The notes below the pieces were generated by a model. The model searched no databases. It saw only the letters and a program-made list of their open reading frames with translations, and was not told the origin of the DNA. A stretch of 63,098 nt of DNA, counting the filler, from Pelomyxa schiedti (taxonomy: Eukaryota; Protista; Evosea): NCBI GenBank assembly GCA_020536535.1. It is 7 parts of 7 records of this genome, joined end to end, with 100 filler letters (N's around TTAATTAATTAA, not from the genome) between each part and the next. Parts side by side here need not be neighbours in the genome. Positions count along the whole stretch, not along the records: positions 37,168 to 53,355 come from JAHLWZ010000040.1; 6 more parts are not named here. One strand, given 5' to 3'. Position numbers and translations under genes: made by a program. The stretch's first letter is position 1. Every line of letters begins with the position of its first letter. Positions 3,001-53,355 of the stretch are shown piece after piece.

Positions 3001-6000
3001 GCTTTTGCTGGTGACCAACTGTATGTGTCCTCACCATTTGCCTAAATTTCAATTCCTCTTATCGTATTGCTATGTAGACTTAAAACAGTGACACCAAGCA
3101 ACACAGTCTCAGAAACGGCAGTGCCACCAAGAAAGGAACCCACAGTTGAGAGCGCACAATACCTGCAATTTGTTGAAATCTGCAAAATGTTGTTCCCACA
3201 TGTCAAATTGCCAGACATGGGACAAGTTTACAAGTGCTTCCTGAATACCAAAGAGTACCTTCACCACCTGGAGATTGTGCGGGATTGGCTTGAACAAAAA
3301 GGAAGGGTCCATCTCAGAGCTGTGGGATTTGATGTCAATGTACCGCGAAAATCATTCCCTCTGTCTCCCCTTTGCTCACCACAAAAAAAAAAAAAAAACC
3401 ACAGAGAGAAACCGGCACGTTGTGCGATATGGAGCAGTGCTGCAAAGAGTTTCGCAGGTCAATTCCCATGCGAGAAATGACATTTCATGCCGTATTTCTC
3501 CCCTCCCTCCTTTTCTTTGGTGCTGTCTTTTCTCACTTGGAAACTCCCCAAAACAGTTGAAATACTTCTTGGTCAACAGCAGTGCTTTCTTTGAGGTTTA
3601 CTTCTTGGACTACACAAAGAAGCACCATGTACCTCTGCCCCCACCCCCCTCACCTCCCCCCTTTTTGTTTTTTTACCTGCTGCGACCTGTTAATACAGGG
3701 AGAGAAGGAGGTTCCACCTGGCGATATTGATGAAATTGTTGATAACGTTGTCCGTGACTTGCAGCAACTTACCGATGGCACACTGTGGCTCAGGCAGGTT
3801 CGTGGGATTGACAAACAAATAAACTGAACACTAATAATCAAACCAGATAAAAGACTTGCACGTCGCAGCCGAGAAGAACAAAGGAAGCACCGAGGAGACC
3901 CAAATTATGTGTGTCACTCTTTTCCACCCTGAAGCAAAATTTAACACACGCCATCAGAGATGGGTTCTTCTCAGTGAAGGATAACACCTTGCTGCATAAT
4001 TACCCATCTTTCATACAAGAAGGACTTGCTCTCATGCAATACCTGGAATGCATTCCCGCTGTTGTGTACTGTTGCAAGCAATTTAATTTGTACATTAAAA
4101 CAGCTGGTGAACTTTCAGAGTTACATCACTCCCTCACAACATCCCAAGTGTCACTCAGACTTTTCAGACAACAGCTTGACAATGTAAAGAAACAGGTTAG
4201 TCTTTTGATAGAGCAATACCCTGTTCACCTCTTCAGTTTGAGGATATTCTCCCTCATTTACCACTGGACGAAAAAACGAGAGTTTCTGAAGAGGGGGCAC
4301 TGACACAGCAAAAATCGCCACTGAATGAAGAAAGTCAACTCGAGACAGAACTAGTGGATCCCTCTACAGAAAGTCACCACCAATTAAGTATACAAAAGCA
4401 GCAATCTCCCAGTCTCATATATGAAAGACAAGTTGCACTTACTCAACTCAAGGCTGTGCTTGATATGGAGAAGAAAAATGCACTTGAGCAACAAAAAGGC
4501 GCACTAGAAGCCGAAAAGGAAACATCATTACACAAACAAAGAAGGGCACTAGAGGTAGAAATGCAACAAGCCTTGAGGCAGCAAGCTTTAGCCCTCAGCA
4601 GTGAAAACCAGGCCGCCCTGAGGAAGCAAGAGGCGGTGCTGACGACTGATAAGCACAAGGCTCTTGAACAACAAAAAAAAGCACTTGAACTTGAAAAAGA
4701 ATCAACACTACAGCAGGAAAGAGAGGCACATGAGAAGAATTACAGTGTACTCCAACAGGAATCGGCACTTATCACCAAAAAGAATGATTCACTCAATACG
4801 CAAAAGAGTGCACTTGAACACGCCTACACCCTTTCAATGGCTTCTGACCTGGAAACAGTTCTCTGTGGGTTCAAGAAAGGAGTGATGGCATTGGTGGAAG
4901 TAAACGATCTCGATCTGACAAGAGCAACCTTCATTGCCAACGGGTCGTTCGGAACTGTGTGCAAAGTTCCTGTTGCATTCCCAAAGTGGTCGAGTGTCAG
5001 TAGGGGAGCACGCAGTGCGCCAACTGAGGTTGCATTGAAAATGATGTTCAACTACAGTGCTGGAATGAGGACCCTTCAATTGAGAACCGAGTTTGAAAGG
5101 GAATATGAAGTTGCAGTGATGCACCCACATTGGTGCTTCACAAATGTCTTCAACCATTTCCGTGGTGACACTTCACTCTCACTCATCAAGGAGAGCTTGA
5201 GAGGTGACTACACAATCGTTGATGGAAACCGAAATTGGGTATCAGGGTGCCGTGAGGGTCAGAGAGCAATTACAGTTTACCAGCGGACCGCATTCATGAC
5301 AATGGAACTGGGAAGGTGCACCCTGGAATCCATCATTTTTCCTCGGATCAGTAACGGGGAGCCACTACATCCCGAAGTGTCACACACACAAGCACAGCCT
5401 TTGTCTCTTCAGAACCAGGCCCCACCACTTCGCCTCACAAAGGATTTGCTCCAGCTCGCATTTTGCGTGCTGTGTGCGGTTGATCACCTCAACACACGAG
5501 GGTGGTTCCACTGTGACATCAAGCCCGACAACATCCTGCTGATGGAGAGGCCACACATCAAAGGAAACATCTGGGCTCTCTGCGACCTCGGAACTGCCGT
5601 GTTCTGCGAAGGCGGGAACCCTCTGGTTTTGCCCAAGGGCGAAACATTCACTGGGAATGCTCAAAACCGGTCACCTGAAGTGATGCAAGCAGAACGAGAA
5701 TTCCCACTTCTCAAGAACGACGTGTGGGCTGTCGGCTGCGTTCTCTTTGAAGCCGTTTCCGGCCGGCATCCATTCACCAATGAGAACCAGGTGAACAGCA
5801 ACCTTATCCGAGATACCACACTCCCTCCCGTCATCCCAGACTGCTCCTCCCTCACGCACGAACCTCACCCCGATCCCACAATCTCGCCCGCTTTGGTCTC
5901 TGGGCTTGTTGGTTGGCTCCTTGAGCGGGAACCCAACAGTCGGCCCACCTCACGCGTGGCGTTCCTCGCTTGCGGAGCTCTCCTGTCACTCCCACACCAG

Positions 6001-7099: not shown

Positions 7100-9108
7100 T
7101 GGTTGGCCTTGATTTGAGAGTATTGCAGGTTGAACTTCTGAATCACCCACTTGACAACCTTGCTGGAGTATGGATGGAATGACTCTGATGTAAGGCAGTG
7201 TCCAAAAAAATTGGGTGTCATAAGTGTGGAACACTCCTGGGGACACAAAACATCAAAATCTGAACACAGGTGCTGGAAACCCCTCAGGTGAAGTTTCATG
7301 AACCCAATCACAATCTCCTTGAAATCACCTTGCCCAATGCCTCGTACAACTGCAGGGAATGTATCCAACAGCAGGGCAACTGAATTCACACAATTGAGGG
7401 CTTGTGAAATGGCCTTGTGAATGCAACTCATGCTTATCCCTGAATGATCCGGTGCTGAGAGATGCTGAAGGAACCACTCCAATCCCACCACAGAGTCTCT
7501 GTAATCACCAGACTCTGTGCAAAGCTGAATCAAGCAGTTTTCAGAAACCTCTGTGTTGGAATTTACAGCCTGCATAACGTGGAAGGTCTCATTCAACCAC
7601 TCTGCAACTTCAATGTTGCCCCAACTGAGCGCAAACACAAGTGATTTGATGATGTCACTTTGGGAGAGTGTGACCCTCGTTGACAACCACCTGGCAAGTG
7701 TGGATCCCCTTGAACATGCTGATGCAAAGGTTGCTGCTGTTGGTCTGAAATTATGCTCTGTGACAAGCCACTGGGCGAGTTCCACATCCCCAGTACTTAC
7801 GCAAACACGATTGAGCACAGCATTATCATGTGGAAGGGTGGGTAACACAGTGAGCAACCACTTGACAACCTCTGGATTGCGCACATCTTGCAGGATGTCA
7901 GTCTCACCATTTTCCTGAAGGAAATCTTGCACCAACGGCCATTGGCAATCTTCCACCGTGCTGTGCTTGTTTGACAGGAGGTAAAATATCAGGCGACTCC
8001 GTTCAAAGGAGCACAATGGGAAGCCGGAAAGGAACCACTTCACATTGCCAGGGTGTGGTCCACATGCACACGAGTTGCAAAGATCGGAAAGCGCCGTTTG
8101 GTGTTTCCCAAGCTCAAACCTCTCAAACAGCCACCTCACAACTTCCATGTTCCCATCATACAGACAGCTCCGAATGGGCTCATACAACAACCACGGTGCT
8201 TCTTTGGTCTCAACGCCAAGCACGCCCACGAGCCACCTGACACCATCAACACTCCCAGAGCTGCACACACTCTGCCCCAAGTGCAAATTCCCACTCTCTC
8301 TCATGTGTTCAATCACTTTCTCCCTCAGCCCAGCAACCCCCCCATTCACCGGGTGATCACTCCCATTCTCAGTGTGACAGGCATTTTCCCATGATACTAT
8401 GCGGTGCCCATCCCACAATCGCGGCAGCGTGCAACCGGTGTTGTTGGTGGTGCTGGTGCCGCACCCTATGGACTCGGGATGGTTGACATCACCAAACAGG
8501 GAGGTGGCCAGTCCCACGTGGCCACCCATCAGCAACCCTGCCAGGGTCGCACTCACTTCCTTCACAACAACACCAAAATCAACAGCATCAACACGCCTGC
8601 TATCGGAATCCCTCTCACCCCCCTGTGACCCTGCCCTCTTTGGGGAAGCCGCAAGAACTACTTTCGCATCTGGTGCCCCACGACCCACGTAAGCCACATC
8701 CATTGGGAACGACAGCTCCCTGATGTCGTTGCCGATCCTCCCGCGCACGTGCCTGTTGTTGAGGATCCACGCCACGCACGACGGTGCCGGAATGGAAGCT
8801 GCGGTGGCGATGGCGCAGTAGCTCCCGATGTAGGCGCCCCATCGTGGGTCGAACGCGAGGACCCTGCGGCACACGAGCCCCACGATGGGGAACATCGCCT
8901 CGGCTGCTCGGAACAGGTCCCACTGCCGGCACCCGTTGGTTCCGCACTTGATGTTCCCTCGCGAATCCCTGGGCCCGTCGAGCCACCCTGGCGACACAAC
9001 GTTGTCCCAAACAACTCGTGACACCGCGAGAACCCTGTCGATGTTGGTGTTGTTGGTATCATCGTCGGTTCGTTGTTGTGGTGCTGGGGGCGCGTGGTTG
9101 TTCGCCAT
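7100..9108 (-). CDS. Family A helical/ankyrin-like repeat protein, copy A1 (3' end lost at the contig edge)
   Basis: Long ORF with repeated G(N/D)x(E/D)(V/L)(V/A)xWL motifs (GSVDGVRWL, GNMEVVRWL, GDVELAQWL, GNIEVAEWL). Nearly identical to 15204-17629. Confidence 0.75.
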
Positions 9109-36960: not shown

Positions 36961-37462
36961 ACACATTTCTGTCTCCATCCTTGGAGTAAAAAAGTGAATA
37001 AAGAAATTTGAAGGTGAAGTGGATGTAAACCTGAACAAAGCCTTGTTGAGGAAGGGGGATAACGTTGNNNNNNNNNNNNNNNNNNNNNNNNNNNNNNNNN
37101 NNNNNNNNNNNTTAATTAATTAANNNNNNNNNNNNNNNNNNNNNNNNNNNNNNNNNNNNNNNNNNNNACAGAGAAGTGGACAGGGACACCAGACACATTG
37201 AGGAACGTGGTTCCGCCTTGAGTGGTGGTCCCGTAACTAGAAATTGCGAACAATTATGCAATGAGTGAGGGGATGCGTGTATGTAGAGGAGGCACCGTAC
37301 CAGTCCCCCGTGTATGAACACCTCCTCAACGCATCCACATCAACATCCACATCCGCACCCACATGTGCACGCCGGTTGTCATGTCGTACAAGAGAGAAAT
37401 AGATGGCTCAAGGATGCACGAATAAAGCGTCGAATTTCTTCGGCTTTTTGGTAACAGCCAAG

Positions 37463-37548
37463 TGGCAGAATAAAAAAAACTGCAGACCGCCGATCCTGGG
37501 ATCGCGACGATAACGATAAATGGCCGCGTTCCGGTCTGTTGATTATTT
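37463..37548. mobile_element. Diverged, inverted copy of the 91-bp TIR element
   Basis: TGGCAGAATAAAAAAAACTGCAGACCGCCGATCCTG...CGACGATAACGA...GCGTTCCGGTCTGTTGATTATTT matches the reverse complement of 9149-9239. Confidence 0.7.
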
Positions 37549-37708
37549 GAAAGGAACCATCAAAGCTCTTAAGCTTGAGTCCCCAGTCGACGAACCATCT
37601 TGTTTCCGGACTCGAATCGACGGTGTGGTTCGGATCCACCTTCGACGTTGAAGCTCTTCTAACCCTTAAGTTGACTCATCCTTGGGCCTGATAAAAAATC
37701 GTAGGAGG

Positions 37709-38602
37709 ATGCGACGTACAAAAGTGTGTGCACTTCAGGAGTACATCAAAACCAAGGGACCAGCACTGGATCTGAGCAGTAACCTACTTACTACCTCGTC
37801 ACTCTCGTTGTTGTTATCGTGATGTTGCTGTTGTTGTTGTTCCAATTCACTCACGTTGGCCACTTGTAGATACAGACCTCATCCATGGTGATGGCATAGC
37901 GATTTACCTGAGAAACGTGGAAGAGTTGTCCCTTGATGGTGGGTGACCCTTTTGGATTTGTTGATCGAGCAAGCCTCACTGCTCTTCTTCAGGGACACTG
38001 TTTGAACAGGGGTGTGATGAATTCTGGAGCATGGTAAGCAGTTCACGTGTACTCAGGACACTCAGGACACTGAGGCTTGCTGGTTTTCCTCTCTTTCATG
38101 GAGGGTGACAATGACTCCCTTTTTAGGTGCACATTTGACACCAGGGGCAGCAGATGGGCTCATACGTCTACTGCAAAATTCAGCCTCCATAAGTTCCCTG
38201 GATATCTCTGGTTGATTTCCCCTCTCCAGCTTCCATTTGAACACACCCACATCCAACACAAGGAAACCCAAATCTTGGTGATGATGCTGGTCGAAAAATA
38301 CTTGCAGTCATTACTCCGCGTATCACTCACTTGAACTGTGAGGGTACGGCCGTTTTATTTTTGTTGGGACACTCTGAAAAATTGCCACAGGATGTGGATT
38401 CTCACATGAAACTTGCTGCTTGATCACAAGCAAGGTGAATACCAATCGTAGGAATCAAGGCCTTGAGCCACAACCACAGCTGTCCCCTTCAGAAAAGTCA
38501 TCAGCAACCCAAATAATTTCATTGATCAAGAGGGAATTTGGTGCTTTGGGGGTTGATTTCAACCAAGAACAAGACATTCAAGCATTGGTGCAAATCCTGA
38601 AG
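37709..38602 (+). CDS. LRR-coiled coil family member L1 (5' part, cut by a gap)
   Basis: The spliced product has ALDLS, VEELSLDG, LRTLRLAG, ISSLDISG-NPNLGDD and ITHLNCEGCG, which are RI-like LRRs. Same exon structure as 45091 and 48079. Confidence 0.75.
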
Positions 38603-38702
38603 NNNNNNNNNNNNNNNNNNNNNNNNNNNNNNNNNNNNNNNNNNNNNNNNNNNNNNNNNNNNNNNNNNNNNNNNNNNNNNNNNNNNNNNNNNNNNNNNNN
38701 NN

Positions 38703-38855
38703 TGTTTTTGTTTTTGTTTTTGTTTTTGTTTTTGTTTTTGTTTTTGTTTTTGTTTTTGTTTTTGTTTTTGTTTTTGTTTTTGTTTTTGTTTTTGTTTTTG
38801 TTTTTGTTTTTGTTTTTGTTTTTGTTTTTGTTTTTGTTTTTGTTTTTGTTTTTGT
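38703..38855. repeat. (TGTTTT)n microsatellite
   Basis: About 25 perfect units next to a scaffold gap. Confidence 0.95.
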
Positions 38856-38862
38856 TGGATGG

Positions 38863-41800
38863 TTACCAAAGTTGATCAGTTTTTGGGATCCTAGGAAATC
38901 TTGGTTGCCTTCGTTTACGAAGGTGAGGTCTGATAGAACTACCCCTAGATATGGGACTGCCTGAAAATAGGGAAAAGGTAAGTGCTTTGCCGTTGGAAGA
39001 GGGAAAAATTACGGGGGATGCTGCAGCATCTAGGGCAACTCTCAGCTTTTTATAGTTGCCATTTAGGTCAACAAGTGCTTCAAGGTCACTGAAGTGTTGT
39101 TTCTCTTGTTTGGTGAGTACTTTCTTGTTCAAGTACTGTTAACCATTTGTTAATTGATAGTGGTGAGGTTGAATATATTTTACCTCATGTGTGTGGTGTA
39201 GTCTTACAACCGGAGCGGATCGAAGCGCTGCAACTGCGGCAACACAGGAATGGAAATTGTTCAATGCCAGGCATTCCTATGTCATTTTTAGAGGAGGAAA
39301 TACAAAAATAATGTCAGGAGACCTTTGCGAAAAGTATGATGTGACGGATTATTTCGGCTCGCTTCTTCTTGTCTTGATTTAGTAGGATTTCACTAGTAAG
39401 CCATAGAGATATCTGTTGTTTTGTTAGGAAGTTTGAGTTTCTGTGGTGCCTTAACCTTGTTCCATAGTACTGTCATTGCTGAAATGTTGGCTGCTTCAGC
39501 ACGTCTAGGGTCACCTACTGGTTTGTTCCAAGCTTGACTGAGAAATTCACTGAGTTTTATCTTTCTGAAAGACTGGCTGTCAAGCAGTGTGACCTGCCGC
39601 GCCAGCTCTGTTGGACTTATATCCAAGAACTCGAAGTTCCGCAAAGATTGAGCACTGATTATTGGTGGAGGAGCAGATGATCCTATCTCAAGGCTCAAGG
39701 GCTAAATGGTGTTATTTATCGTACTAAAAGAAGTGGCAGACCTCTCTTGTTAGCATCTTGATGACATTTCGCGCAACGTGGGGGTTTATGATAATGTTAT
39801 GAGCAAATAATTGCAACAGCGTTTTCAGCTCTTCCGACTCGGTGACTGTAAAAGAGAAGGGAAAATGAGGAAAAAAATAGTTTTACGGATGTTGAATACA
39901 ATCGCCGCGATACCTGTTTAAAATACGTTACAAGAAAAAAATGGGAATGAAAAGAGACTTATCAAGCCAGACTTGCAAAACGTAAATGACTCTGGGGTAA
40001 CCTAGTTAGAAACAAATTGTAAATGTCGTAGCTACCTGACTTGGATGGTGTCTCTATTTTTAAGATAGCGTTCCTTAGCCTCTGGTGTCATGCTAGGGGA
40101 TGGGTCTGGCATAACATATCTAGAGAAAATTAAAAAGCAAAAACAGTATGGGAAAAAAACCGTGCCACAAGTGTCTTCAGTAATTCAGTGGGTGTTGTGA
40201 ATGTACGATATGTAAGTAAAAGGGAGGTGACAAAGCTGTTATCTGAGAAGAGGTAAACATATACTAGATTGATAAATAATCCAACCAATGGGAGTACTTG
40301 GAGTCACTTTTTCAATCAACTTAGGGAGTGTGGCCGCCAAAATTTCTTTTTGTTGCTTTGAGGATGCTACGTGTATGTCAAGGGCAGTTAAATAACGAAT
40401 GCACATACCCTCCAGTTTTGCAGCAGCCGGAGTTGTAGCTGGAGGTTTCATCTGAAAATAGGGTGAGATAGTCAGAAGCAAAGTAATACTACATACTTCC
40501 ATCCATAATATATTGTCATCTGTATCGGCATCTGCAAATGGGTACTCGCCATGAACTGGGAAGGGATTTTTCCCGTCACGGATCAATTCTTCGTACATCT
40601 TTCTCCAAAGGGTAGCAGTATCAGCAGTGCAGCTTACAATGGACAGTGCTGGGGTGTGTGTTGAGGGATGGGGACTTTCACTTCTCGGCTTTTCAGTCCC
40701 AGAGGTAGGTGCTCCTGCATTGCTTCCTATTACGGGCCGGGCACTGTTTTTAACCAGGCTGGCCAAGTTCATTTCAGTTCGCATATGAACAAGTTTTGAC
40801 TCTGTTCGGGAAATCACATCTGTCGACTTTGTAAGCTCCTGTTCGGACTGTGAAAGAGCACTTTGTAGTGCGTCGAGCTGCTGAAGTAAGAAAGGGTATT
40901 GAATGCCGTGAGGTCAACCTGGGTGTTGAAGGATTGGACTTCTCTTTCTTTGGAGAACTTTTTGAACAACTTTTCAATCGTAGTTGACAACTCCTCCTTT
41001 AGTTGTTCTTTATCACGTTCACTTTGAGTCAGCAAATCTCTAAACGTAAACAATAAATAAAAAATTACACATGATGTGGAAGAGACCTCAAGACATTCAC
41101 TTTTTGTTGAAGCAACTGTTTTGCTGTTGTAAGCTGTGTAACCTGAAGCTTGAAGGCGGAAACTTGTTGTTCAAGTAACAACCTCTCTTTATCAGGACCA
41201 GTTCGTGGGCCTTGCCTGACGAATGAGGTCAAAGAAATGAATGGGGAAATGGAAAATACTGCAAGGTTCGAATTTCCTCATGAGAGGTATCCAGTTTTTG
41301 TGAAAGTGCTGCATTTGTTCTCCTCAGGCCTGAGTTTTCTGCTCTCAGTTGTTCTATCTCATGCCTCATGGCTTCTACGGCAGCATTTCCTGCATGAAAA
41401 TGAGTTGGGTTTTTAGAGAAACAACCTTGCAGCAAATTCGGATCTATGATACAGCTTGTCTGTTGGAATATTGTTATCTTATAACCGACGCATAGGGTGG
41501 AGTGTTACTCTTTGAGCGCAGGAATCAAATTCGGAGTACTCTTTGCCCACAGAGAGCTCTTCTATGGTTTTGGCGGGGGTATCTACAGGAGGTGCCTTAT
41601 CACGGAAGTGAGAGGAGGGTTTAAAGTGCGGGGCTGGCTACAGGTGCGTGCATATGCGGCAGTGATTTTGATGGTGTTCCAGGCTCAGCAGCTTTTCTTG
41701 TTCCCATCAGAGGTGCGTCGTGGCGTAAGTGATTGCCTTTCCCAATTTCCAAGTCAAATCCACCATGTGGCCCAGGACTCCGTGATGGAGTCATCCCAGG

Positions 41801-42378
41801 AGAAGTTGGTATTTGCCCTATCCCAAAAGTGTGTGTACTTGTAGTAGTAGTAGTAGTAGTTGCAGTATTACTACTAGTAGTAATTTCACCACCCAAAGAC
41901 GGGGATTGGCTCTGATCCACACCAGAATTTGCCAAATCCAGCGAGACAATTCCAGAACCGGAATCACCAGGTTGTGACGTCACCGCGTACGCAACTGCAG
42001 GCGGCGGAGGCGCCTTGAACGTAGGCAGCCTCGTCGTCGTCCCAGTCCCAGTGCCAGTTGAACTATTGGCGCCAACATTCGCCGAGGCAGAATTAGATCC
42101 AGATCCAACAGTGGCAGGAGTGGTGGCATTTGTGCTGCTATTAATAGGCGTTGGCGGGGCTGGGCCCCCGGGCCTGTGGGCCATCACGATCGGCGACGCC
42201 GTGGGGAGGGAGCGGCCTCCCATAATTGGGGGCTGCGACGACGGCGGCGGGGGCGGTGATGTTGACTGGGACGGCGCCGGTGATGGCGTACCTCCGCGCG
42301 AGCCTACACACGCCCGTCAGCATTGTGGGTGGTTTGTTGTTTGGACTACAACAGCGAAAAAACGGTACCTGAACTCAT
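38863..42378 (-). CDS. Ras guanine nucleotide exchange factor (REM plus CDC25 domains), multi-exon, 3' end lost at the gap
   Basis: ATG at 42378 in a 10-nt first exon, then a Pro/Ser/Thr-rich region and a coiled coil. REM: AATLPKLIEK, SFLLTYRTFTTPTELL. CDC25: FLDISPTELARQVTL, LNNFHS, NYKKLR, PYLGVVLSDLTFVNEGN, KLINF. Confidence 0.9.
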
Positions 42379-42524
42379 CGTCCTTCTGGTGGCGAAGTTT
42401 TGTTCTTTTTCGTTTGATGAGGTTTCACGTAACGGTTCGTACATCAAATTTTGGTGATGGGTGTTCAATTTATTACAAAGGCTGTTTGTTTGTTGTTTTC
42501 CATTTGTTTCTTTTGTGTTAATTC

Positions 42525-44873
42525 TCAACCTCTGTTGGCATATAGCTGGGCAGCACGTCTTACAATCCTTTTTATGTTGATGTGGCCTGGTGGCTGTAAG
42601 TAGAGCTTCTGAATATAGCCTATAATTGCTTCAAGTGAATTGAGTGTGACCAAGTGCGGTGCTATGCTGTTCAGTAGCTCAGTACAGACATACGGTAGGA
42701 ATTCAACAAATCCTTTGTATTCTCCCGACCTTGGTGCGGTGTTGTTGGAACGAGGGAAAAATCAAGCGAGGGAGGAATTACCGGCATTTAAAAGCAATGA
42801 AATGATCAAATAGAACTACGGAATCGGTGATCTTCAAGTCCCGCAGAAGGAGACAGAGAAACCATCTGCCTTTATATGAGTTTCTAGCACACTATTTTTG
42901 TTTGAGTAAACCGGAAAGCAAAGTGGTGCAACATGACACCGTTTCTCTCCAAATGAGCGAGTGCACGTGCTGTAACACCAATTACTTTAATTTAATGTGC
43001 CCGGTAGGGGGGTAAAACATACAATTCGTGTCAACCAACAGAGTTCGAAAGGACTCAATCATTTCTTGTGCAAAAATAAAACCGTTTGAGGGTGACGCAA
43101 GAGGCTTGGCAAATGTTAAGGAATGAAAATTAAGGAGCGCCGCCATACAATCAGTTGCTCCATCACTTTGCTCAAACAGAAAAAGGTGTCGGCCTCAATA
43201 AACTGCAAAGAAACAGGTGGCAAACAATCCATAACCTTTAAGTCACCTACCAACAAATTACTGGAATGCCAAAAAACTTCAATGTTCTGAACCTCTTGTT
43301 GCCGATAATAGGAACACAATCATAAAGATTGTTGGAATTTCGTTCAACCTGTCACGAAAATTAATATTGATATCGCGTTGGCAGTTCACAGTTCACATTA
43401 CCCCTGGAAGTAGCCAATTTGGTCATGTTGCTTTGCCCATATAAACAAAATTCGCTTCAACATGAGTCTGACATTGGGTGTCGCTAGCGCTTGGCTGAAT
43501 CCAAAAGGGTATGTGCGGAGCACATCAGTGTCAATCTGATAATACCTGACAATTAAATATAAATAAGCCACTTGATTTGGAAGAAAAGCCCATACAATGA
43601 AAGGTCTGGATCATTTCCAATGTAGTTCGCAAGGCAGATGTTGGGACCACTCCGTGTATTTGAGCTTGTTTCTGGAGGTGTTTCAGCAGGAAGAGGAGTG
43701 GCAGTTGCAGTGGGAGTTGGAGTTGGAGGTAAATTGGATATTTGAGGTTCCGGAGTTGGAGTTGGATCAGTGGGAATCACATTGAAAAATGATGCTGGGA
43801 CAGTTGCAGGTGGTGGGTTGATTGAAGGGATCGGCGGAATTGGATGTGCCGGTGGGGTGTGTTTATGTGGTGAGGGTGAGGGTTGTTGGGTGCCTTGAAC
43901 ACCAGTTGACAACTGGATAGAAGCTAGCTGTTGCCTTAAAAGCTCTTGCTGTTCACCAAGCCTTTTTTTTTGGTCCTCTTCCATCTGCTGCCTCAATTTC
44001 GCTTGCTCTTCAATGAGCAGCTTGTGGCACTGGTCTTGAGCTTGCTGCAACTGCTGGGGGCTCTGCGAACAAATGGAGCGGACTTTCGAGTCGACTGGGT
44101 TGTACGTCTCTCTTATCAACGCGGAATACTGATGCATGATATCTCTGTGTGCCCTCCGGTGCAAAGAAAGTTGAGGTGGAAGCACGCCGAGCATAATCAG
44201 CCAGACCGTGGCACGTGCCTGTGTTGGGGTCTTATTGTTCCACAATGACTGTGTCAATTCATCTGTTGAGAATATAAATACCCTCGGATCGAAGAGTATA
44301 CAAATCTATTGGTATATATTTTCATATATATTTACTCGGCGTTTGAAGTTAACTACCTATGCTTGCAGTAAGGTCGTTCTTCATCATCATGTCCTTGAAC
44401 TTTGCCACCACATCATCGGACATTATTGGAGGCAAGTTTTCCAAGTCAGCCTCCTCCCCTTCCGGCTCCACCACAACAATTTCGTCATCCTCTGCACCAC
44501 CCGGTGTGCTCGAAAGAGGTGCATTGCCAGTTGTATTGCCACTACTGCTGCTAGAACTACTGCTACTACTAGTAGCAGCAGCTCCTCCACTCTCATTATT
44601 ACTATCAGGAACAATACTAACTGTAGGAGTAGGAAAATTTTCGGCAGTCTTTGCAGTAACACATGACGTGGGATTCACACTCTGCGGTGATGCTGGTACG
44701 TTGCCCGGCTGATGTTGCGTGTTGTCGGCGGTTGTGTCCAACGAACCGCCAAACACGCCACTGACGCCAATCCCCGGCGAGACGTCGCGTCGGTATCCGG
44801 TACCCGTCGTTGACGAAGGAGGAGCGCTGGTTGCAGTTATGGGATAGCTGCTGTTGTCACTGTCCGACGTCAT
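42525..44873 (-). CDS. TBC-domain Rab GTPase-activating protein, multi-exon
   Basis: RATVWLIMLG, arginine finger QIDTDVLRT, glutamine finger GYFQGLNEI and IEADTFFCL. Ends RIVRRAAQLYANRG* at TGA 42525. Confidence 0.9.
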
Positions 44874-45090
44874 ACGGAGTGGCGTGGGGTCTCGGCCTGA
44901 TGGTTACTTTTTGATGGTGATTCAAAAGAGCTGAATCCGGTAGAGGGGCTGGAACCTTTCAGTAGCTTTACGACCTGCTTGACCAACACAACCTTTTTGT
45001 GAAGAAAATGAGGGAGGGTTACAGGATAACTCACGCAGTTCCAGGCCTGTTTTTGACCGAACGCAGCAAAAAATCTCTTTTCCATCACGG

Positions 45091-47946
45091 ATGTCGCTGA
45101 AGGTGAACGTGCTCAAGGAGTACGCCAAAACCAAGGGACCAACACTGGACCTGAGCAGTACTTCCCCCGCCCCCCCCCCCAGCCCCCTCGACCACCGCGC
45201 CGTCCCCGGTGTTGTTGTTATAACCCAATCGACTCACGTTTGATGTCCACGTTGTTTAGACACAGACATGGTGAAGGGTGGGGGGCTGGCGATATACATG
45301 AGAAACGTGGAAGACCTTAACCTCAGTGGTGCCACTACACTTGGAACTTTTTTTTTTTGTCTAGACACTCTTCTTCAGGGACTCTTTTTCAACAAGGGTG
45401 CGAGGAATTCTGGAATGTGGTCACTGCTTCACGTGTACTCAGGACACTGAGGCTTGCTGGTTTTCCTCTCTTGCACAGAGCCTTACAGTGACTCTCTTTT
45501 AAGGTGCACAGTTGATACCAACGGCAGCAGATGGGCTCATTTGGCTAATGACAGCTTCTGCTAGCATAAGTTCTCTGGATATCTCAGGTTGGTTTCCCAC
45601 CTTTTCGAAATTTGAACACACCCACATCCAACACAAGGCAACCCAAATCTTGGTGATGATGCTGGTCGAAAAATCCTTGAGGGTATATCTCCACGTATCA
45701 CTCACTTGAAGATTGATGGTGTGACCTTTTTCTTTTGTTGATACACTCTGAAAATTGCCACAGGATGTGGATTCTCACTGGAGACTTGCTGCTTGATCAC
45801 AGACAAGGTGCACACCAATCGTATCAATAAAGGCCTTGAGCCAGAAGTACATGAACAGTATCAAATAATTTCATTCCTCAAGAGGGAATTTGGTGCATTG
45901 GGGATTGATTTCAACCAACAACGAGAATTCAATGCAATGGTGCAAATACTGAAGGCTGGCTTTCAGAAGGTTGGGACAACGGTCACAATTTCCTTTGAAT
46001 CACTTTTCCAGGTGAAGGATGAGAACAACATTCTCCAAGCTCGTCTCTCAGCTTGTGAGACTGCACAAGTGCAATTACAGGTTTCCCAGAAGAAGTGGGA
46101 AGAAGACACCACACATTTCCAGGTTATGGCCATATATATAATATAAAATTATATTATATGTCTCATGCCCATTCTTCAGGATGATATCAAAGTACTCCAA
46201 ACGCATCTGTTGGGCTGTGAGACTGCGAAGCACAACTTGCAAGCCCAATTACAGGCCTCCCAGAAGTGGGAAGAAGAGGCAACACACCTCCAGGTTTTGG
46301 AACGAAAAACAATTTCTTGTTATCCAACTTTCTCACACTACATCTCCAAAATAGGATGATAACAGAACCCTCCAGTCTCGTCTGTTGGATTGTGAGACTG
46401 AAAAGAACAAGTTCCTGGCTGATGCAACACATTGCCAGGTGATAGAACAACATACAACACCCACAATTCTCACTCACGTCTCCATCTTCAGGTTGAAATA
46501 CGAATTCTCCAATCTCGTCTATCAGAATGTGAGACGGCAAAGAACAACAAGTTGCAAGCCCAATTCCAGGCTTTACTGACGCAACGGGAAGAAGAGATAA
46601 CACAGTACCAGGTTGTGCAACTCAACCTGAACCAGAAAATTGAGGAACTGGAGCAAAGGCTCCAACAACAGCGGAAACAACTCCAGCAATACGAAAATGA
46701 AGCTCAACTTATGCCTTCGAAGGAGTTGCTTCCAGGAAGCCACGAGTGCAGTTCACCAGTATTGCCTGAACTCACAGCAGCTTTCAAACTGGCCACACAG
46801 CTCAGATCACAGTTGAAAGAATCGGCACCACAGTTTGTTTCTCTTGTGGAGTCACTCAACAAACTGAGCAAGAGCCTCCAAACAGCCACACAGCACAATG
46901 AGAAGCTTGCATCCCACCTGCGGGATATCATTACGTTGAAGGACACACTGAAAAATCAACTCGAGGAAACTTGTGACTCTTGCCAGAAGGTTCTTGGGCA
47001 GACACTGACGGCTCAAAACAGTGAGGCAGAAATTCAGCAGTGCTTAAGGAACATCTCCGAATTGACAAAGAAGGTGTGGGGAATCAAACCAGTGAGCTGT
47101 GTGACTGAAAGCACCAATGACGCCCTTATTCCCTCACCACCAAAAGGTATTTTATGACTTCCTTAGCAAGACTTTAACAAAAAACCAAACAGGCATTGAG
47201 AACTTGTTGAAACCTGGGGTTTGTTTGCCAGAACAATGTCTGTCTAATACCACAACACAAGTGGAGGAACCTTTCCATTTTCTGGGCACACTCACTCACA
47301 CACTCACTCAACTTCAAGGGTGCCAGTTTGAGGAGTGCACTAAACTTGCAGACCAACACACCATGCTGTCAAAGCAGCTCTCTGAGCAGGTAACACTTGG
47401 TCACAACCTCCACAAGCAAATCGAAGTGATGCAAGGATCCTGTTCGGAGTTGATGAGGGAACACAAAACCAAGTGGGTGCTGAAGTGTGGGCTGGAGGGT
47501 AACGAGCAGTTCATTGCATTGCCACATGTGTGGTCAATGCTCTCTGAGGTGCTCCCTCAGGCTCAACAGGCTGTCATTGACCTCATTGTTTCCAAGTCAA
47601 CCTCTTCCAGCAACCATCAGAGACAAACACCAGTTATGCCACAGCAGACAACACTTCCAGGGTGCACTTCGACTTCAACCACCTCCTCATCAGCATCAGC
47701 CTTCCAACAACTTTCTGGTGCCAGCTCCAATGATGTGGATAAGTGCCTTGTGTGTGATGAGAGGCCACCCAGTGTTTGCTTCCAGCCCTGTGGTCATGTT
47801 GTCGTGTGCTCTGAGGTTTGTTTCCTTTTAGTGTTGCCTCTCCCATTAACGCTTCTCTATCGCCACCAAAAATACAGTGCTCAGGAGTCGTAAAGAGGTG
47901 CACACTGTGCCGCACTCTCATTCAACACAAGCAAACCCTTTTCTGA
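45091..47946 (+). CDS. L2: LRR, long coiled coil and C-terminal IAP/MGRN-type RING finger (putative E3 ligase)
   Basis: ATG at 45091 and LRR exons as in L1/L3. The spliced C-terminus is CLVCDERPPSVCFQPCGHVVVCSE-CSGVVKRCTLCRTLIQHKQTLF*, ending at TGA 47944-47946. Confidence 0.8.
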
Positions 47947-48078
47947 GAACGTTCTACCAAGAACAATTCGATAGGGAGCTGAATGAGACTCACCAACTCT
48001 GTGTGGCTCCACTAACTTGGTTTCGGCTGCTTTGATCACCGCAGATCAAAAACTTTTTTTCAGTGAAACACCCCACGG

Positions 48079-50917
48079 ATGACGCTGCGGTCAAAAGATG
48101 ACGTGCTCAGGGAGTACATCAAAACCAGGGGACCAACGTTGGATCTGAGCAGTACTTGCATCTCCCACCGCAATATTATATCATCGTTGTTCTGATCCAA
48201 CGACTCATGCTGTTGGTAGATACCAACGTCCTGGAAGGTAGTGGCTTGGCGATTTACATCAGGAACGTGGAAGAACTTAACCTCAGCGGTTCACCATGTT
48301 ATGTATTTTGTACTAAGTCAACTGACAACTCTCCAGGGACACTGTTTGGACAGGGGAGTGATGAATTCTGGAGCGTGGCCACCACATCTCGCAGACTCAG
48401 CACACTGGGGCTTGCTGGTTTGTTGCCTCACTCGTATGTGTTAACATTAACTCTCCTTTTAAGGTGCATATTTGTCACCAAGGTCAGCAGAAGGGCTCCT
48501 CCGACTACTACAAAGTCCGGCCCCCATACGTTCTCTGGATATCTCTGGTTGGTTTCCTGCCCTCAAATTCTATTGTTGGCCAACATACACAAGGCAACCC
48601 AAATCTTGGTGATGATGCTGGTCGAAAAATACTTGCAGTCATTACTCCGCGTATCACTCACTTGAACTGTGAGGGTACAGCCATTTTATTTTTGTTGGGA
48701 CACTCTGAAAAATTGCCACAGGATGTGGATTCTCACATGAAACTTGCTGCTTGATCACAGGCAAGGTGAATACCAATCGTAGGAATCAAGGCCTTGAGCC
48801 ACAACCAGTCTCTCAGCACCCACTCACCACACAACCGCTGCTTCTCCCAACAGTACCACAAGTAGAATCCACGCGGCAACCACAGCTGTCCCCCCCTTCA
48901 GAAAAGTCATCAGCAACCCAAATAATTTCATTGATCAAGAGGGAATTTGGTGCTTTGGGGGTTGATTTTAACCAAGAACAAGACATTCAAGCATTGGTGC
49001 AAATCCTGAAGGCTGACTTTCAGAAGGTTGGGGCAAAGAAAAAATCATTTGATTCACTTTTCCAGGTCAAGGATGAGAACAAACTTCTCCAATCTCGTCT
49101 GTCAGATTGTGAGACTGTGAAGAACAGTTTGCAGGCACAAGTCCAGGCTTCCCAGAAGAAGTTGGAAGAAGAGGCAACACATAACAAGGTTCAAACAGTT
49201 TATCCAAATTTCTCTCACATCTCCGTCATCTGCAGGCTGAGAACAAAACTCTCCAAACACAACTGAACAAATTGGAAGAAGAGTTGACATGCTGCAAGGT
49301 TTGTGTTCTTTATTGATGGCCATTATTAACTCAAAAAACAACAGCAAACGATCAGCACGATGACATCACTGATTTCAGCGGGAATATCACAGTTTGCTGT
49401 CAAAGACCTCCTTGGAACAGGGTCATACGGTGCAGCATTCAAGGTTCAATTCCGCGGGAACAGAGCGTCACCACAACAGATGATGGTCATGAAACTTCAG
49501 TTCAACATGGAGAACATTTCCACACAGACACTTCTGAGGAACAAATACATGACCGAGTGCCAGACACTTGCTTTGATTCCTCACCACTGGAACATCATTC
49601 ACCCTCTTGGTGGTTTTGTGATTCCCAGGTAAAAAAAACGAAATGTGCTTCCATTTTTGACTGATGAACTCACACAAAACAACAGCCTTCCACCTGAGTT
49701 CCTTCACTTCATTCATGACAAACCAGTTTATGAAGAATGGGCCCAACACAACAAATCCTTTGTGTTCTTCATGCCTTGCGGAGGGATTTGCCTTTCTGGC
49801 TCTCCACAGTCATTTCTGTCATCACTTCCACCCTCCAAACTTGTTGGTGTCACATTGGATGTTTTCAAACAAGCACTTTCAGCAGTGAACCACCTTGAGA
49901 AAAATCTGATTGTTCACAGGTTTGCCTCCTTTCCAGTTTTCTCAAGTGAGTGAAATCTTTCTTGTTGAAACAGAGACATCAAGGAAGACAACATCGTTGT
50001 TGACCCACAAACCAACAAGCTCACCCTCATTGACTTTGGGATGGCACAGGATTGCATTGCAGACAACCAAGGAAACATCAGCACCATCCTCACACCAACA
50101 GGCAACACATGGGGAAACCTTGGAACCATACCACCTGAGGTCATGACATTCATCAACACAAGCAGTGGTGCTCAGATGTTCTCGCTCTCCAAGTGTGACT
50201 CCTTCAGCCTTGCCCTCACGTTTTACAATGCACTGTTGCCTGCATCACACAAGTTCATCGGCAGCACATTGAATGGTGACATGTCACACTTCACCACAAA
50301 GGCCCTTGTGGAATCCTTCCCACTTCCTCCTCCCTTCACTCCACCACCATCCAGAGCACAACAACTGAGAGACACACAGGCGGAGGGACTGACAGGGGTG
50401 CTGATCAAAATGATGCACCCAGTCCAGTCCCTCAGGATGTCTGCTTCTCAGGCAATCTCCACAGTTGATGCCCTTCTGTCTACAACACAGCCAGTGACCC
50501 CATCAAGGGTTCTATCGCACTCACCCTCCACCACGGAAATCCACAGTAGTCCCTCTTCAAATGATGGGGATTCCTCTGTAATTGGAAAGCCATGCCCCCA
50601 GTGTGGAGTCAGAACAATCCACTTCAGGTTTCTCTGAATTTCTATCACTGGAACCCTTCTCAAACTTGTGTACAGGGACCATTACTCCCATGACATTCGC
50701 TGCCGCCTATGTGGATGCAAATTCTGGTGTGCCCCACTTCTTTTTTTTATTATGTGGTTTCTAAAGACTGGTGATTGACAGCTATGTGTGCCTCAGTGTG
50801 TACGAGGGTTACCCAGCGAAATGTAGGAACGGCTGCAAATTATTTTGCTCACCTCAATGTGACTGCCCTGTGTGCCCTGAGTGCACTGATACTCAGAAAT
50901 GTCCATACTCGAGCTGA
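48079..50917 (+). CDS. L3: LRR, coiled coil, PINK1-like kinase and RBR RING2/IBR-like Cys-rich domain
   Basis: ATG at 48079 and LRR exons. Kinase motifs GTGSYG, VMKLQFN, HWNIIH, HR-DIKEDN, DFG and GNLGTIPPE. The spliced tail is KPCPQCGVRTIHFR-DHYSHDIRCRLCGCKFC-YVCL...CDCPVCPEC, ending at TGA 50915-50917. Confidence 0.8.
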
Positions 50918-51225
50918 ACACAAATTAAATGCAGAGGACCCATAGAAGTTGAGTCCTGTAATTTGTGTGGTTAATGTAACTGGAAATTAATTAGGTATGT
51001 AGAAATGAAAATAAATTGGTAACGTGGAGAGAATAATTACTATTGGATGGATGTGCGGTGGGTTTGAAATAATGGCGGAAATTTACCGTGTATTATTACT
51101 GCCTCGTGACGCAGGTAAGTGGCACCCACAGCAGATGTCACTTATTTATACACCCAAACCAATTTTAATTAATCCAGTATCCTACACCTTCTCGGTAATA
51201 ATTCTCATAAAAATAATAATACACT

Positions 51226-51450
51226 ACAATACAATACACTACAATACAATACAATACACTACAATACAATACAATACAATACAATACAATACAATACAAT
51301 ACAATACAATACAATACAATACAATACAATACAATACAATACAATACAATACAATACAATACAATACAATACAATACAATACAATACAATACAATACAAT
51401 ACAATACAATACAATACAATACAATACAATACAATACAATACAATACAAT
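51226..51450. repeat. (ACAAT)n microsatellite
   Basis: About 45 units next to a scaffold gap. Confidence 0.95.
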
Positions 51451-51550
51451 NNNNNNNNNNNNNNNNNNNNNNNNNNNNNNNNNNNNNNNNNNNNNNNNNN
51501 NNNNNNNNNNNNNNNNNNNNNNNNNNNNNNNNNNNNNNNNNNNNNNNNNN

Positions 51551-52998
51551 AGCAACCCAAATAATTTCATTGATCAAGAGGGAATTTGGTGCTTTGGGGG
51601 TTGATTTCAACCAAGAACAAGACATTCAAGCATTGGTGCAAATCCTGAAGGCTGACTTTCAGAAGGTTGGGACAAAGAAAAAATTATTTGATTCACTTTT
51701 CCAGGTCAAGGATGAGAACAACATTCTTTATTGAGCCATTATTATGAACTCAAACAGCAACAGCAAACGATCAGCACGATGACATCACTGATTTCAGCGG
51801 GAATATCGCAGTTTGCTGTCAAAGACCTCCTTGGGACAGGGTCATACGGTGCAGCATTCAAGGTTCAATTCCGCGGGAACAGAGGGTCACCACAACAGAT
51901 GATGGTCATGAAACTTCAGTTCAACATGGAGAACATTTCCACACAGACACTTTTGAGGAACAAATACATGACCGAGTGCCAGACACTTGCGTCGATTCCT
52001 TACCACTGGAACATCATCCACCCTCTTGGTGGTTTTGTGATTCCCAGGTAAAAAAAACGAAATGTGCTTCCATTTTTGACTGATGAGCTCACACCAAAAC
52101 AACAGCCTTCCACCTGAGTTCCTTCGCTTCATCCATGACAAACCAGTTTATGAAGAATGGGCCCAACACAACAAATCCTTTGTGTTCTTCATGCCATGTG
52201 GTGGAATCTGCCTTTCTGGTTCTCCACAGTCATTTTTGTATTCGCTTCCAGCATCCAAACTTGTTTGTGTCACATTGGATGTTTTCAAACAAGCTCTTTC
52301 AGCAGTGAACCACCTTGAGAAAAATCTGATTGTTCACAGGTTTGCCTCCTTTCCAGTTTTCTCGAGTGAGTGAAATCTTTCTTGTTGAAACAGAGACATC
52401 AAGGAAGACAACATCGTTGTTGATCCACAAACCAACAAGCTCACCCTCATTGACTTTGGGATGGCACAGGATTGCATTGCAGACAACCAAGGAAACATCA
52501 GCACCATCCTCACACCAACAGGCAACACATGGGGAAACCTCGGAACCATACCACCCGAGGTCATGACATTCATCAACACAAGCAGTGGTGCTCAGATGTT
52601 CTCGCTCTCCAAGTGTGACTCTTTCAGCCTTGCCCTCACGTTTTACAATGCACTGCTTCCTGAATCGCACAAGTTCATCGGCAGCACATTGAATGGTGAC
52701 ATGTCACACTTCACCACGAACGCCATTGCCGAATCCTTCCCACTTCCTCCTCCCTTCAACCCACAAGTGGGCAGACGTAGAGACCCGCATGCTGAGGGAC
52801 TTACATGCGTGCTTTTCAAAATGATGCACCCAGTCCAGTCCCTCAGGATGTCTGCTTCTCAGGCGCTATCTGAAATTGACCACATAAGGGCGTGCTGGTC
52901 TTTAGGTGCAAAGCCCTGCCCAAACTGCAAGAGCTATGTAGTTCATTACAGGTTTCTATGGTCTTCCTCAAAATGTGCAACTAACGCCACTTTACAGG
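51551..52998 (+). CDS. L4: partial paralog of L3 (kinase plus start of the RING2-like domain); coiled-coil exon deleted, possibly a pseudogene
   Basis: Near-identical kinase exons followed by KPCPNCKSYVVHYR. There is a deletion at about 51725 relative to L3. Confidence 0.65.
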
Positions 52999-53355
52999 GA
53001 ATGCAATCCTGTGCCATCCCAAAGTCAATCAGGGTGAGCTTGTTGGTTTGTGGATCAACAATGATGTTGTCTTCCTTGATGTCTCTGTTTCAACAAGAAA
53101 GATTTCACTCACTCGAGAAAACTGGAAAGGAGGCAAACCTGTGAACAATCAGATTTTTCTCAAGGTGGTTCACTGCTGAAAGTGCTTGTTTGAAAACATC
53201 CAATGTGACACAAACAAGTTTTGAGGGTGGAAGCGATGACAGAAATGACTGTGGAGAGCCAGAAAGGCAAATCCCTCCGCAAGGCATGAAGAACACAAAG
53301 GATTTGTTGTGTTGGGCCCATTCTTCATAAACTGGTTTGTCATGAATGAAGTGAA
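52999..53355 (-). repeat. Inverted partial copy of the L3/L4 kinase exons
   Basis: Reverse complement of about 52125-52480 with several substitutions relative to both L3 and L4. Confidence 0.8.

Follow-up and report, generated by a model that had tools for sequence, protein, structure and literature searches.

What is encoded where neighbouring genes share the same N-terminal half and then end in unrelated domains? This question is raised by four related gene copies, here called L1 to L4, in a 63,098-nt stretch of joined DNA from Pelomyxa schiedti (the window, filler included; Archamoebae, assembly GCA_020536535.1). The copies lie on the piece from positions 37,168 to 53,355 of the window, which is the entire scaffold JAHLWZ010000040.1 (16,188 nt). 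An initial annotation of this DNA described them as clustered receptors, in which a constant leucine-rich repeat (LRR) sensor and a coiled coil are joined to shuffled ubiquitin- or phospho-signalling outputs, and likened them to cytosolic immune receptors. Our analysis leads to a somewhat different answer. With a probability of roughly 0.6, the genes belong to a Pelomyxa-specific multidomain signalling family built by exon shuffling, whose members would consist of a repeat head, a linker, a coiled coil and either a kinase or a RING output. The evidence comes mainly from the two complete copies, L2 and L3, which are laid out as follows.

45091..47946, plus strand: L2, a complete 11-exon gene with a model of 761 aa; LRR, linker and a coiled coil of four units, then a helical/disordered middle and a RING at the C-terminus
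45260..45718, plus strand: L2 LRR exons 2–5, one unit of 27–28 aa per exon, phase 1 at both ends
45764..46122, plus strand: L2 exon 6, with the last LRR/cap, the invariant linker and the first coiled-coil unit
46180..46611, plus strand: L2 coiled-coil units 2–4, spread over exons 7 and 8 (each in phase 0 at both ends) and the beginning of exon 9
47744..47943, plus strand: L2 RING finger, C3HC4, IAP/MGRN/LRSAM1 type, split by the intron 47816–47877, at the extreme C-terminus
48079..50917, plus strand: L3, a complete 12-exon gene with a model of 758 aa; LRR, linker and coiled coil, then the kinase and a Cys-rich tail
49345..50487, plus strand: L3 kinase domain, exons 8–10; G-loop, VMK lysine, HRDIKEDN catalytic loop, DFG, PPE, and an insertion of about 25 aa before strand beta-5
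50593..50914, plus strand: L3 Cys-rich tail, 15 Cys in 69 residues, exons 10–12

L3 begins 132 nt after the stop codon of L2, and the tandem pair is located on 12.7 kb without a gap. Each of the two spliced models, which were built from coordinates, forms a single open frame with GT-AG boundaries at all introns (44–102 nt in L2 and 46–68 nt in L3), in a genome with 7.4 introns per gene and GT-AG boundaries in 98.4% of them (PMC8887013). The starts and stops equal those of the GenBank models, the products of which have 740 and 745 aa; a few internal splice sites therefore differ from ours. L2 and L3 are real genes, intact and tandem. The spliced models were used for blastp and tblastn searches against the fetched proteins and loci, for the ratio of nonsynonymous to synonymous substitution rates (dN/dS) and for the tree, and family scans of L2 and L3 covered their exons one by one.

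Comparison of the copies showed that L1, L2 and L3 share a homologous N-terminal LRR module with the same introns, as the initial annotation had it. Exons 2–5 measure 69/81/84/81 nt in L2 and L3, exon 3 of L1 being 90 nt, and all of them are in phase 1. Over exons 1–5 the copies are 77%–82% identical, versus 62%–69% for the introns; this stronger conservation of the exons, like dN/dS values of 0.31–0.58, speaks for the reality of the genes. The 12 LRR units of L1–L3 align as a repeat of 27–28 residues of the RI-like type, with four to five units per head, and a profile of these units matches the solved LRR protein 3goz_A at E 9.3e-7; single LRR exons, which are too short, gave no match in Pfam. 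Downstream of the repeats, the proposed linker QIIS(L/F)(I/L)KREFGALG(V/I)DFNQ is present exactly as written in L1, L2, L3 and L4, with 22 invariant columns across the four copies. It is followed by exon-sized coiled-coil units in phase 0, of which there are four in L2, one long and one short in L3 and none in L4. Units 2–4 of L2 are 43%–62% identical to unit 1 and constitute the DNA repeat family D8. Altogether, L2 and L3 are 58% identical over their first ~255–290 residues and share no significant similarity beyond, which bears out the earlier statement that the C-termini after the coiled coil are unrelated. Given phases of 1-1 for the LRR exons and 0-0 for the coiled-coil exons, and a kinase cassette that opens at a phase-0 boundary, the joins most likely originated by exon shuffling.

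At the end of L2, the RING of the IAP/MGRN type is well founded. Pfam zf-C3HC4_3 (PF13920) matches exon 10, which holds the first half of the RING, at E 4.9e-6, and PF13920 is also recorded for the 740-aa GenBank product. The 330 residues ahead of the RING gave no family match, and no SAM domain was matched in exons 9 and 10. The predicted fold of exon 10 consists of long helices and disorder with a predicted local distance difference test score (pLDDT) of 49, and was excluded from fold searching.

For L3 and L4, the initial annotation had proposed a kinase followed by a RING2/IBR-like domain, the first part of which stands. Pfam Pkinase scores 35.3 bits on L3 exon 10 alone and 71 bits on the GenBank L4 product, and the catalytic motifs suggest an active Ser/Thr kinase in both copies. 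The kinase is very divergent, and searching the PDB with its single exons by phmmer returned nothing below E 0.01. A 19-member family profile (A5), from which the Pelomyxa protein annotated as PINK1 was left out, was more informative: its top 12 PDB matches are all PINK1, at 59.5–50.8 bits, and PINK1 in 6eqi scores 59.5 bits over profile positions 5–276, against 46.5 bits, over the core only, for the next family. A five-sequence profile of the closest clade (A6) again ranks PINK1 first, with 36.4 bits versus 34.5 bits for Pim-1, and the single L4 product (P0001) scores 32.8 bits with TBK1 and 30.7 bits with PINK1. In the kinase model (pLDDT 84), the insertion of about 25 aa forms two helices between strands E84–88 and E114–120, and it pairs in the HMMER alignment with the segment of PhPINK1 just before beta-5. 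We take it to be the counterpart of PINK1 insertion 3, a putative ubiquitin-binding element. The largest structural overlap of the model is also with PINK1 (300–311 residues), Foldseek searches of the PDB could not tell the kinase families apart, and ESM Atlas feature searches returned generic kinases only. The profiles thus argue, with moderate confidence, that PINK1 is the closest of the known kinases to the family kinase. In the ESM Atlas, the closest cluster by structure comprises 777 Sel1-kinases of Mucoromycota (TM 0.68 by query, 303 residues aligned), another lineage-specific expansion of repeat-headed kinases. P0031, which in Pelomyxa carries the annotation 'PTEN induced putative kinase 1', has 362 aa, shows no obvious presequence or extensions and starts with a coiled-coil-like segment; it matches solved PINK1 weakly (34.5 bits), its branch is very long and lies outside the family, and it is perhaps a divergent family member rather than a true PINK1 orthologue.

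The second part of the proposal, the RING2/IBR-like domain, did not hold up as a family assignment. What speaks for it is Cys spacing only: the first eight Cys of the L3 tail are arranged as C-x2-C-x16-C-x2-C ... C-x2-C-x10-C-x3-C, and L4 retains the first CxxC only. No match to Pfam IBR/RING2 (PF01485) was found at E ≤ 10 on exons 10 and 12 of L3 scanned singly, and for the GenBank L3 product kinase families alone are recorded, with neither IBR nor RING. Between the first CxxC (residues 686/689 of the model) and Cys706 there is no Cys, and His residues are located at 695, 699 and 702. With His at the site of the catalytic Cys, this tail is not expected to carry out thioester chemistry. Among the 50 proteins and 9 loci sampled, no other carrier of an L3-type tail was found.

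A search with the GenBank L4 product revealed ~33 Pelomyxa paralogs of 200–640 aa, 640 aa being the upper reach of this word search, to which longer proteins were invisible. The heads of these paralogs differ. At least nine have ankyrin (ANK) repeats, P0006 has SH3+CS, P0014 a Ras/Roc-type GTPase and P0030 Sel1 repeats, and the remainder have a coiled coil only or no recognised head. The linker and coiled-coil unit are homologous in P0006, P0007, P0008, P0021 and the locus L003, in the last of which ankyrin exons immediately precede the linker. Maximum-likelihood analysis of the kinase domains paired L3 with L4 (100/99) inside a 100/100 clade that also holds ANK- and SH3+CS-headed members, and placed the GTPase-headed member among those with ankyrin heads. 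Because L3 and L4 are nested in this way, the heads must have been swapped repeatedly. By these sequence relationships, the ankyrin head is the commonest, the LRR head is a derived state, and both ends are exchangeable around the linker–coiled-coil neck. Accordingly, of the constant sensor with shuffled outputs, the shuffled outputs stand, given the exchanged C-termini of L2 and L3, but the sensor is not constant, as ANK, SH3+CS, Rho-type GTPase and Sel1 heads are found among at least 30 paralogs. The two Pelomyxa papers (PMC8887013 and PMC10579272) are silent on the family, no description of it was found in the literature, and its genes are deposited as hypothetical proteins.

Expression of the family is documented by P0007, which is an uninterrupted open reading frame (ORF) of 497 aa on a Logan contig from SRR23919877, a single-cell transcriptome of P. 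schiedti. It aligns without gaps to the L3 model at the exon junctions 8/9 and 9/10, and lacks the 21-aa exon 7 of L3. This transcript confirms family expression and the neck–kinase splice pattern, not the expression or splicing of L2 or L3 themselves.

Several irregularities were seen among the paralogs. A near-identical ankyrin–linker–coiled-coil–kinase locus is present on two scaffolds (L003 9139–10671 on JAHLWZ010000753.1 and L004 7535–9067 on JAHLWZ010001242.1), which are either haplotigs or assembly redundancy. At L003, GenBank splits the locus into fragments of 123 aa and 209 aa and misses the ankyrin exons at ~8340–8960. The models P0010, P0033, P0021, P0028 and P0032 look merged or duplicated; among them are a kinase C-lobe repeated ahead of a full kinase, a C-lobe followed by the ankyrin head of the next gene, and long unrelated C-terminal extensions. 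Such models suggest tandem arrays elsewhere as well as model errors in the family.

These features enable us to propose a putative working model. The repeat head would bind a protein or a surface, and the coiled coil would pair or cluster the molecules. Once clustered, the kinases would be switched on by trans-autophosphorylation, and the C-terminal RING by dimer formation, and the activated output would mark nearby substrates by phosphorylation or ubiquitylation. Most members, L3 and L4 among them, have the kinase as their output, which in L3 is followed by the Cys-rich zinc module; in L2, the kinase has been replaced by the helical/disordered stretch and the C-terminal IAP-type RING, yielding a putative LRSAM1-like E3 ligase. 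As their heads are similar, L2 and L3 would put two different marks on similar targets. Our favoured guess for the process served, the handling of intracellular cargo such as endosymbionts, phagosomes or mitochondrion-related organelles, is tentative and should be taken as rather doubtful.

Some observations weigh against a shuffled, Pelomyxa-specific signalling family and the model drawn from it. What backs the splicing of LRR to RING exons in L2 is ORF integrity and the annotators' model, and neither the LRR head nor the tail of L2 or the zinc tail of L3 was found in any other sampled protein or locus (proteins ≤640 aa). A homodimer prediction for the linker–coiled-coil of L3 gave a score of 0.20 (mark 0.32), which speaks neither for nor against pairing of the neck. 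With L2 exon 6 (linker/coiled coil), 0 matches at E ≤ 0.001 were obtained among 1.84 billion cluster representatives, a library which evidently lacks the proteins of this genome, L2 itself being unreturned, so that the zero result means absence in other organisms only. The same segment gave 0 matches among metagenome contigs, and a word search with the linker alignment in a length window of 85–271 aa also gave 0. Moreover, nothing in the family links it to symbionts or infection, and ordinary kinome expansion would account for most of the data equally well.

This last account survives best among the alternatives, and we regard it as a serious if less probable contender. It holds that the genes are ordinary lineage-specific signalling or cytoskeletal scaffolding proteins, in which kinome expansion supplied the copies, the heads direct kinases to cellular structures of a large, multinucleate amoeba and L2 stands as a one-off fusion. 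The heads are indeed generic protein-interaction modules, mostly ankyrin, and the family's genes are scattered through the genome between housekeeping genes. The LRR dN/dS below 1 and the lack of an NTPase, TIR or death-fold domain on L2 and L3 fit it as well, and there are precedents in the ankyrin/coiled-coil NEKs of Giardia (PMC3218828) and in the Mucoromycota Sel1-kinase cluster, the best structural match in the ESM Atlas. However, the mosaic tracts of 97%–100% identity, the patches of divergence and the change in coiled-coil copy number amount to fast turnover, which is more typical of conflict or recognition genes. A PINK1-like kinase and an IAP-type RING also belong to ubiquitin-linked quality-control pathways, and the host carries cytosolic prokaryotes (PMC10579272).

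How far, then, does the family resemble immune receptors? The description of the host as a phagotrophic, symbiont-bearing protist is accurate, as P. schiedti has cytosolic bacterial and archaeal endosymbionts; it is an anaerobic amoeba whose obligate consortium comprises two bacteria and a methanogen, and two of these three prokaryotes lie unenclosed in the cytosol (PMC10579272). In such a host, and with output domains of these kinds, an immune or symbiont-surveillance role would be plausible. As for the proteins themselves, the immune-receptor reading found no direct evidence, and NTPase, death-fold and TIR domains are absent from them. No NACHT or NB-ARC NTPase was matched on any L2 or L3 exon or on the GenBank products, and an NLR/STAND receptor was rejected for lack of this NTPase. 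dN/dS came to 0.45–0.58 on the LRR, compared with 0.31 on the kinase; the LRR values reflect relaxed purifying selection rather than positive selection.

A bolder version of the signalling reading would make these proteins writers of the ubiquitin system. The PINK1-like kinases would phosphorylate ubiquitin or ubiquitin-like domains at sites where the heads dock, L2 would ubiquitylate the same targets, and the L3 tail would be a ubiquitin binder derived from Parkin RING2. Together they would represent a PINK1/Parkin-type pathway, redeployed and multiplied to police or manage endosymbionts in an amoeba with reduced mitochondria and a cytosol crowded with bacteria and methanogens. We consider this version improbable.

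The outer copies, L1 and L4, are incomplete, and with them comes the question of how much of the tail diversity is real. They and the adjoining assembly features are listed below.

37709..38602, plus strand: L1, 5' fragment; start codon, LRR exons 1–5 and the linker exon as far as its nt 212, stopping at an N gap
38603..38702, no strand: 100-N scaffold join, which ends L1 inside the linker exon
38703–38856, no strand: (TGTTTT)25.7 microsatellite, directly beside the first N join
51218–51450, no strand: (AATAC)46.6 microsatellite, non-coding, 300 nt past the L3 stop codon
51451–51550, no strand: 100-N scaffold join, with the microsatellite on its left and the mid linker exon of L4 on its right
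51551..53037, plus strand: L4, 3' fragment; from mid linker exon, no coiled-coil units, kinase exons 8–10, and only the first CxxC of the tail
51779–53037, plus strand: GenBank model Pelo_607 (P0001, 366 aa), the annotated kinase at L4
53000..53355, minus strand: inverted partial copy of kinase exons 9–10, which replaces the last exons of L4 and reaches the scaffold end

The exon coordinates and phases of L1 agree with those of L2 and L3. Compared with L3, L1 is a mosaic, 97%–100% identical from exon 5 on and 45%–80% upstream. The L4 kinase is 93.5% identical to that of L3 at the nucleotide level, with long tracts of 97%–100%, one patch of 82% and a divergent tail. This mosaic pattern among the copies indicates gene conversion or recombination between paralogs. 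In L4, the linker exon runs straight into the pre-kinase intron; an in-frame GT donor is present after the linker and the usual donor site is lacking. The inverted copy, 356 nt long, is 98% complementary to 49703–50058 and 95% to 52123–52478, and is either a genuine inverted duplication or an amplification chimera.

The last 100 nt of L1 are identical to the first 100 nt of L4. L1 and L4 may thus be two ends of one gene, in which case the four clustered genes would be three; an LRR head on L4 would imply ~830 nt of missing gene sequence. The scaffold was joined through RNA read pairs among near-identical exons, and the placement of L1 and L4 beside L2 and L3 is for this reason not secure. Perfect microsatellites lie directly beside both N joins and are the probable cause of the contig breaks. 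To the right of the gap at 51451–51550, the sequence begins in the mid linker exon and is 97% identical to L3 48912–49088. With a microsatellite on one side and a mid linker exon on the other, the two sides of this gap are not continuous, and an ORF reading through the N run (51024–51734) is therefore an artefact. Of the clustering of paralogs described earlier, the gap-free tandem of L2 and L3 stands, and the membership of L1 and L4, which abut N joins and share 100 identical nt, does not stand as firmly.

It could accordingly be argued that the tail diversity is partly an artefact of assembly and annotation, with phi29 chimeras, RNA-pair scaffolding among near-identical paralogs and some pseudogenes behind it. 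The DNA was obtained by phi29 amplification from seven single cells, assembled by SPAdes --sc with k up to 121 and scaffolded by P_RNA_scaffolder using RNA read pairs, and genes were called by Augustus, PASA and EVM with Smart-seq2 transcriptomes (PMC8887013). Each of the N gaps interrupts the conserved linker exon, their outer flanks share 100 identical bases, the inverted copy truncates L4, L4 lacks the coiled-coil exons and the usual donor, and the models P0010, P0033 and P0021 are visibly fused or duplicated. Nevertheless, such an origin fits L1 and L4 and not L2 and L3, for which a recent chimera is excluded by 12.7 kb without a gap, open frames in every exon and divergence at all levels (62%–78% nucleotide identity), and the neck–kinase junction is corroborated by the P0007 transcript of a paralog; as an explanation of the tails it is thus highly improbable.

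Beside the family, GenBank annotates on this scaffold an 861-aa RasGEF and a 636-aa RabGAP-TBC protein, both on the minus strand, in addition to the 740-aa zf-C3HC4_3 protein, the 745-aa Pkinase protein and the 366-aa kinase. The RasGEF (RasGEF_N plus RasGEF) and RabGAP-TBC genes are two ordinary genes between L1 and L2 (positions 38863–42184 and 42525–44873), both with long low-complexity tracts of Ser/Thr/Pro/Gln. A large RasGEF also adjoins the SH3+CS-headed paralog on L008. Near other family members, an 892-aa reverse-transcriptase (RVT_1) gene was found at L002 5112–10385, 4 kb from a truncated member at the contig end, and the ankyrin-headed paralog on L003 has two tandem F-box genes (1264–3863) and a 1143-aa polyketide/fatty-acid-synthase-like gene with ketoacyl-synt, Acyl_transf_1 and PP-binding domains (12809–16436) in its vicinity. 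An Rfam scan of the scaffold piece found nothing.

If the proposed family is what it seems, it would provide an unusually clean and dated case of exon shuffling in a protist, in which two adjacent genes continue one head–neck cassette into a ubiquitin ligase and a kinase, respectively, and phase-matched exons of single repeats would explain how the joins were made. It would also show that PINK1-like kinases have multiplied greatly outside animals, uncoupled from import into mitochondria and joined to recognition modules. The view of PINK1-type kinases would be widened thereby, and soluble, naturally diverse relatives would become available for biochemistry. To our knowledge, almost nothing is known about how the hosts of such consortia sense or control their residents, and the family would be a concrete candidate for host sensing or control of cytosolic prokaryotes in Pelomyxa.

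Among known systems, L2 is reminiscent of LRSAM1, with an N-terminal LRR, a coiled coil and a zf-C3HC4_3 RING at the very end in the same order. The repeats of LRSAM1 are shorter than the 27–28-aa, RI-like units of L2, which number only four to five, no SAM domain was found in L2, and its neck has no sequence relatives outside Pelomyxa among the 1.84 billion representatives and the metagenome contigs. The resemblance to LRSAM1, an animal LRR and SAM E3 ligase that recognises cytosolic bacteria for xenophagy (PMC8567218, PMC11863841), is probably convergent architecture rather than orthology.

The kinase differs in its surroundings from PINK1, which is the ubiquitin kinase of the PINK1/Parkin mitophagy pathway and phosphorylates ubiquitin and Ubl domains at Ser65. 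The family has no mitochondrial presequence, transmembrane segment or N-terminal extension, and carries an LRR or ANK head and a coiled coil instead. The long C-terminal helical extension is also lacking in the family model, in which the last helix (322–337) is followed by disorder, and most paralogs end 10–20 residues past the last kinase helix. Furthermore, the family has at least 30 copies, versus one PINK1. A true PINK1 orthologue was rejected on the grounds of the missing presequence, transmembrane helix and terminal extensions. The L3 tail, for its part, recalls the RING-between-RING (RBR) ligases Parkin, HOIP and Ariadne in its C-P-x-C, 16 residues, C-x2-C, F-C-[YW]-x-C and a second group of four ligands, and Parkin RING2 has a spacing close to it. 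L3 differs from them in having no RING1, no Pfam IBR match on singly scanned exons and an added third Cys cluster; given these absences and the His in place of the catalytic Cys, a true RBR ligase was rejected.

Animals and amoebae also have cytosolic kinases with ankyrin or LRR heads, namely RIPK4/ANKK1, LRRK1/2 and the Dictyostelium ROCO proteins (PMC9573974), and P0014 likewise joins a small GTPase to a kinase. In contrast to these, the Pelomyxa kinase is not closest to TKL/RIPK in sequence searches, and its neck and linker are family-specific. A ROCO kinase was rejected, L3 having no Roc-COR tandem and P0014 a Ras/Roc-type GTPase with no COR recorded. The ANK/coiled-coil NEKs of Giardia (PMC3218828) and the Sel1-kinases of Mucoromycota offer a parallel in scale, since one type of kinase is present there in tens to hundreds of paralogs that carry ankyrin, Sel1 and coiled-coil modules. 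They belong to another kinase family, whereas in Pelomyxa the head and neck are also found with a RING in the place of the kinase. Repeat-headed kinases and LRR-RING ligases are known kinds, and what is unusual in Pelomyxa is the PINK1-like type of kinase, the shared neck and the exchange between kinase and RING.

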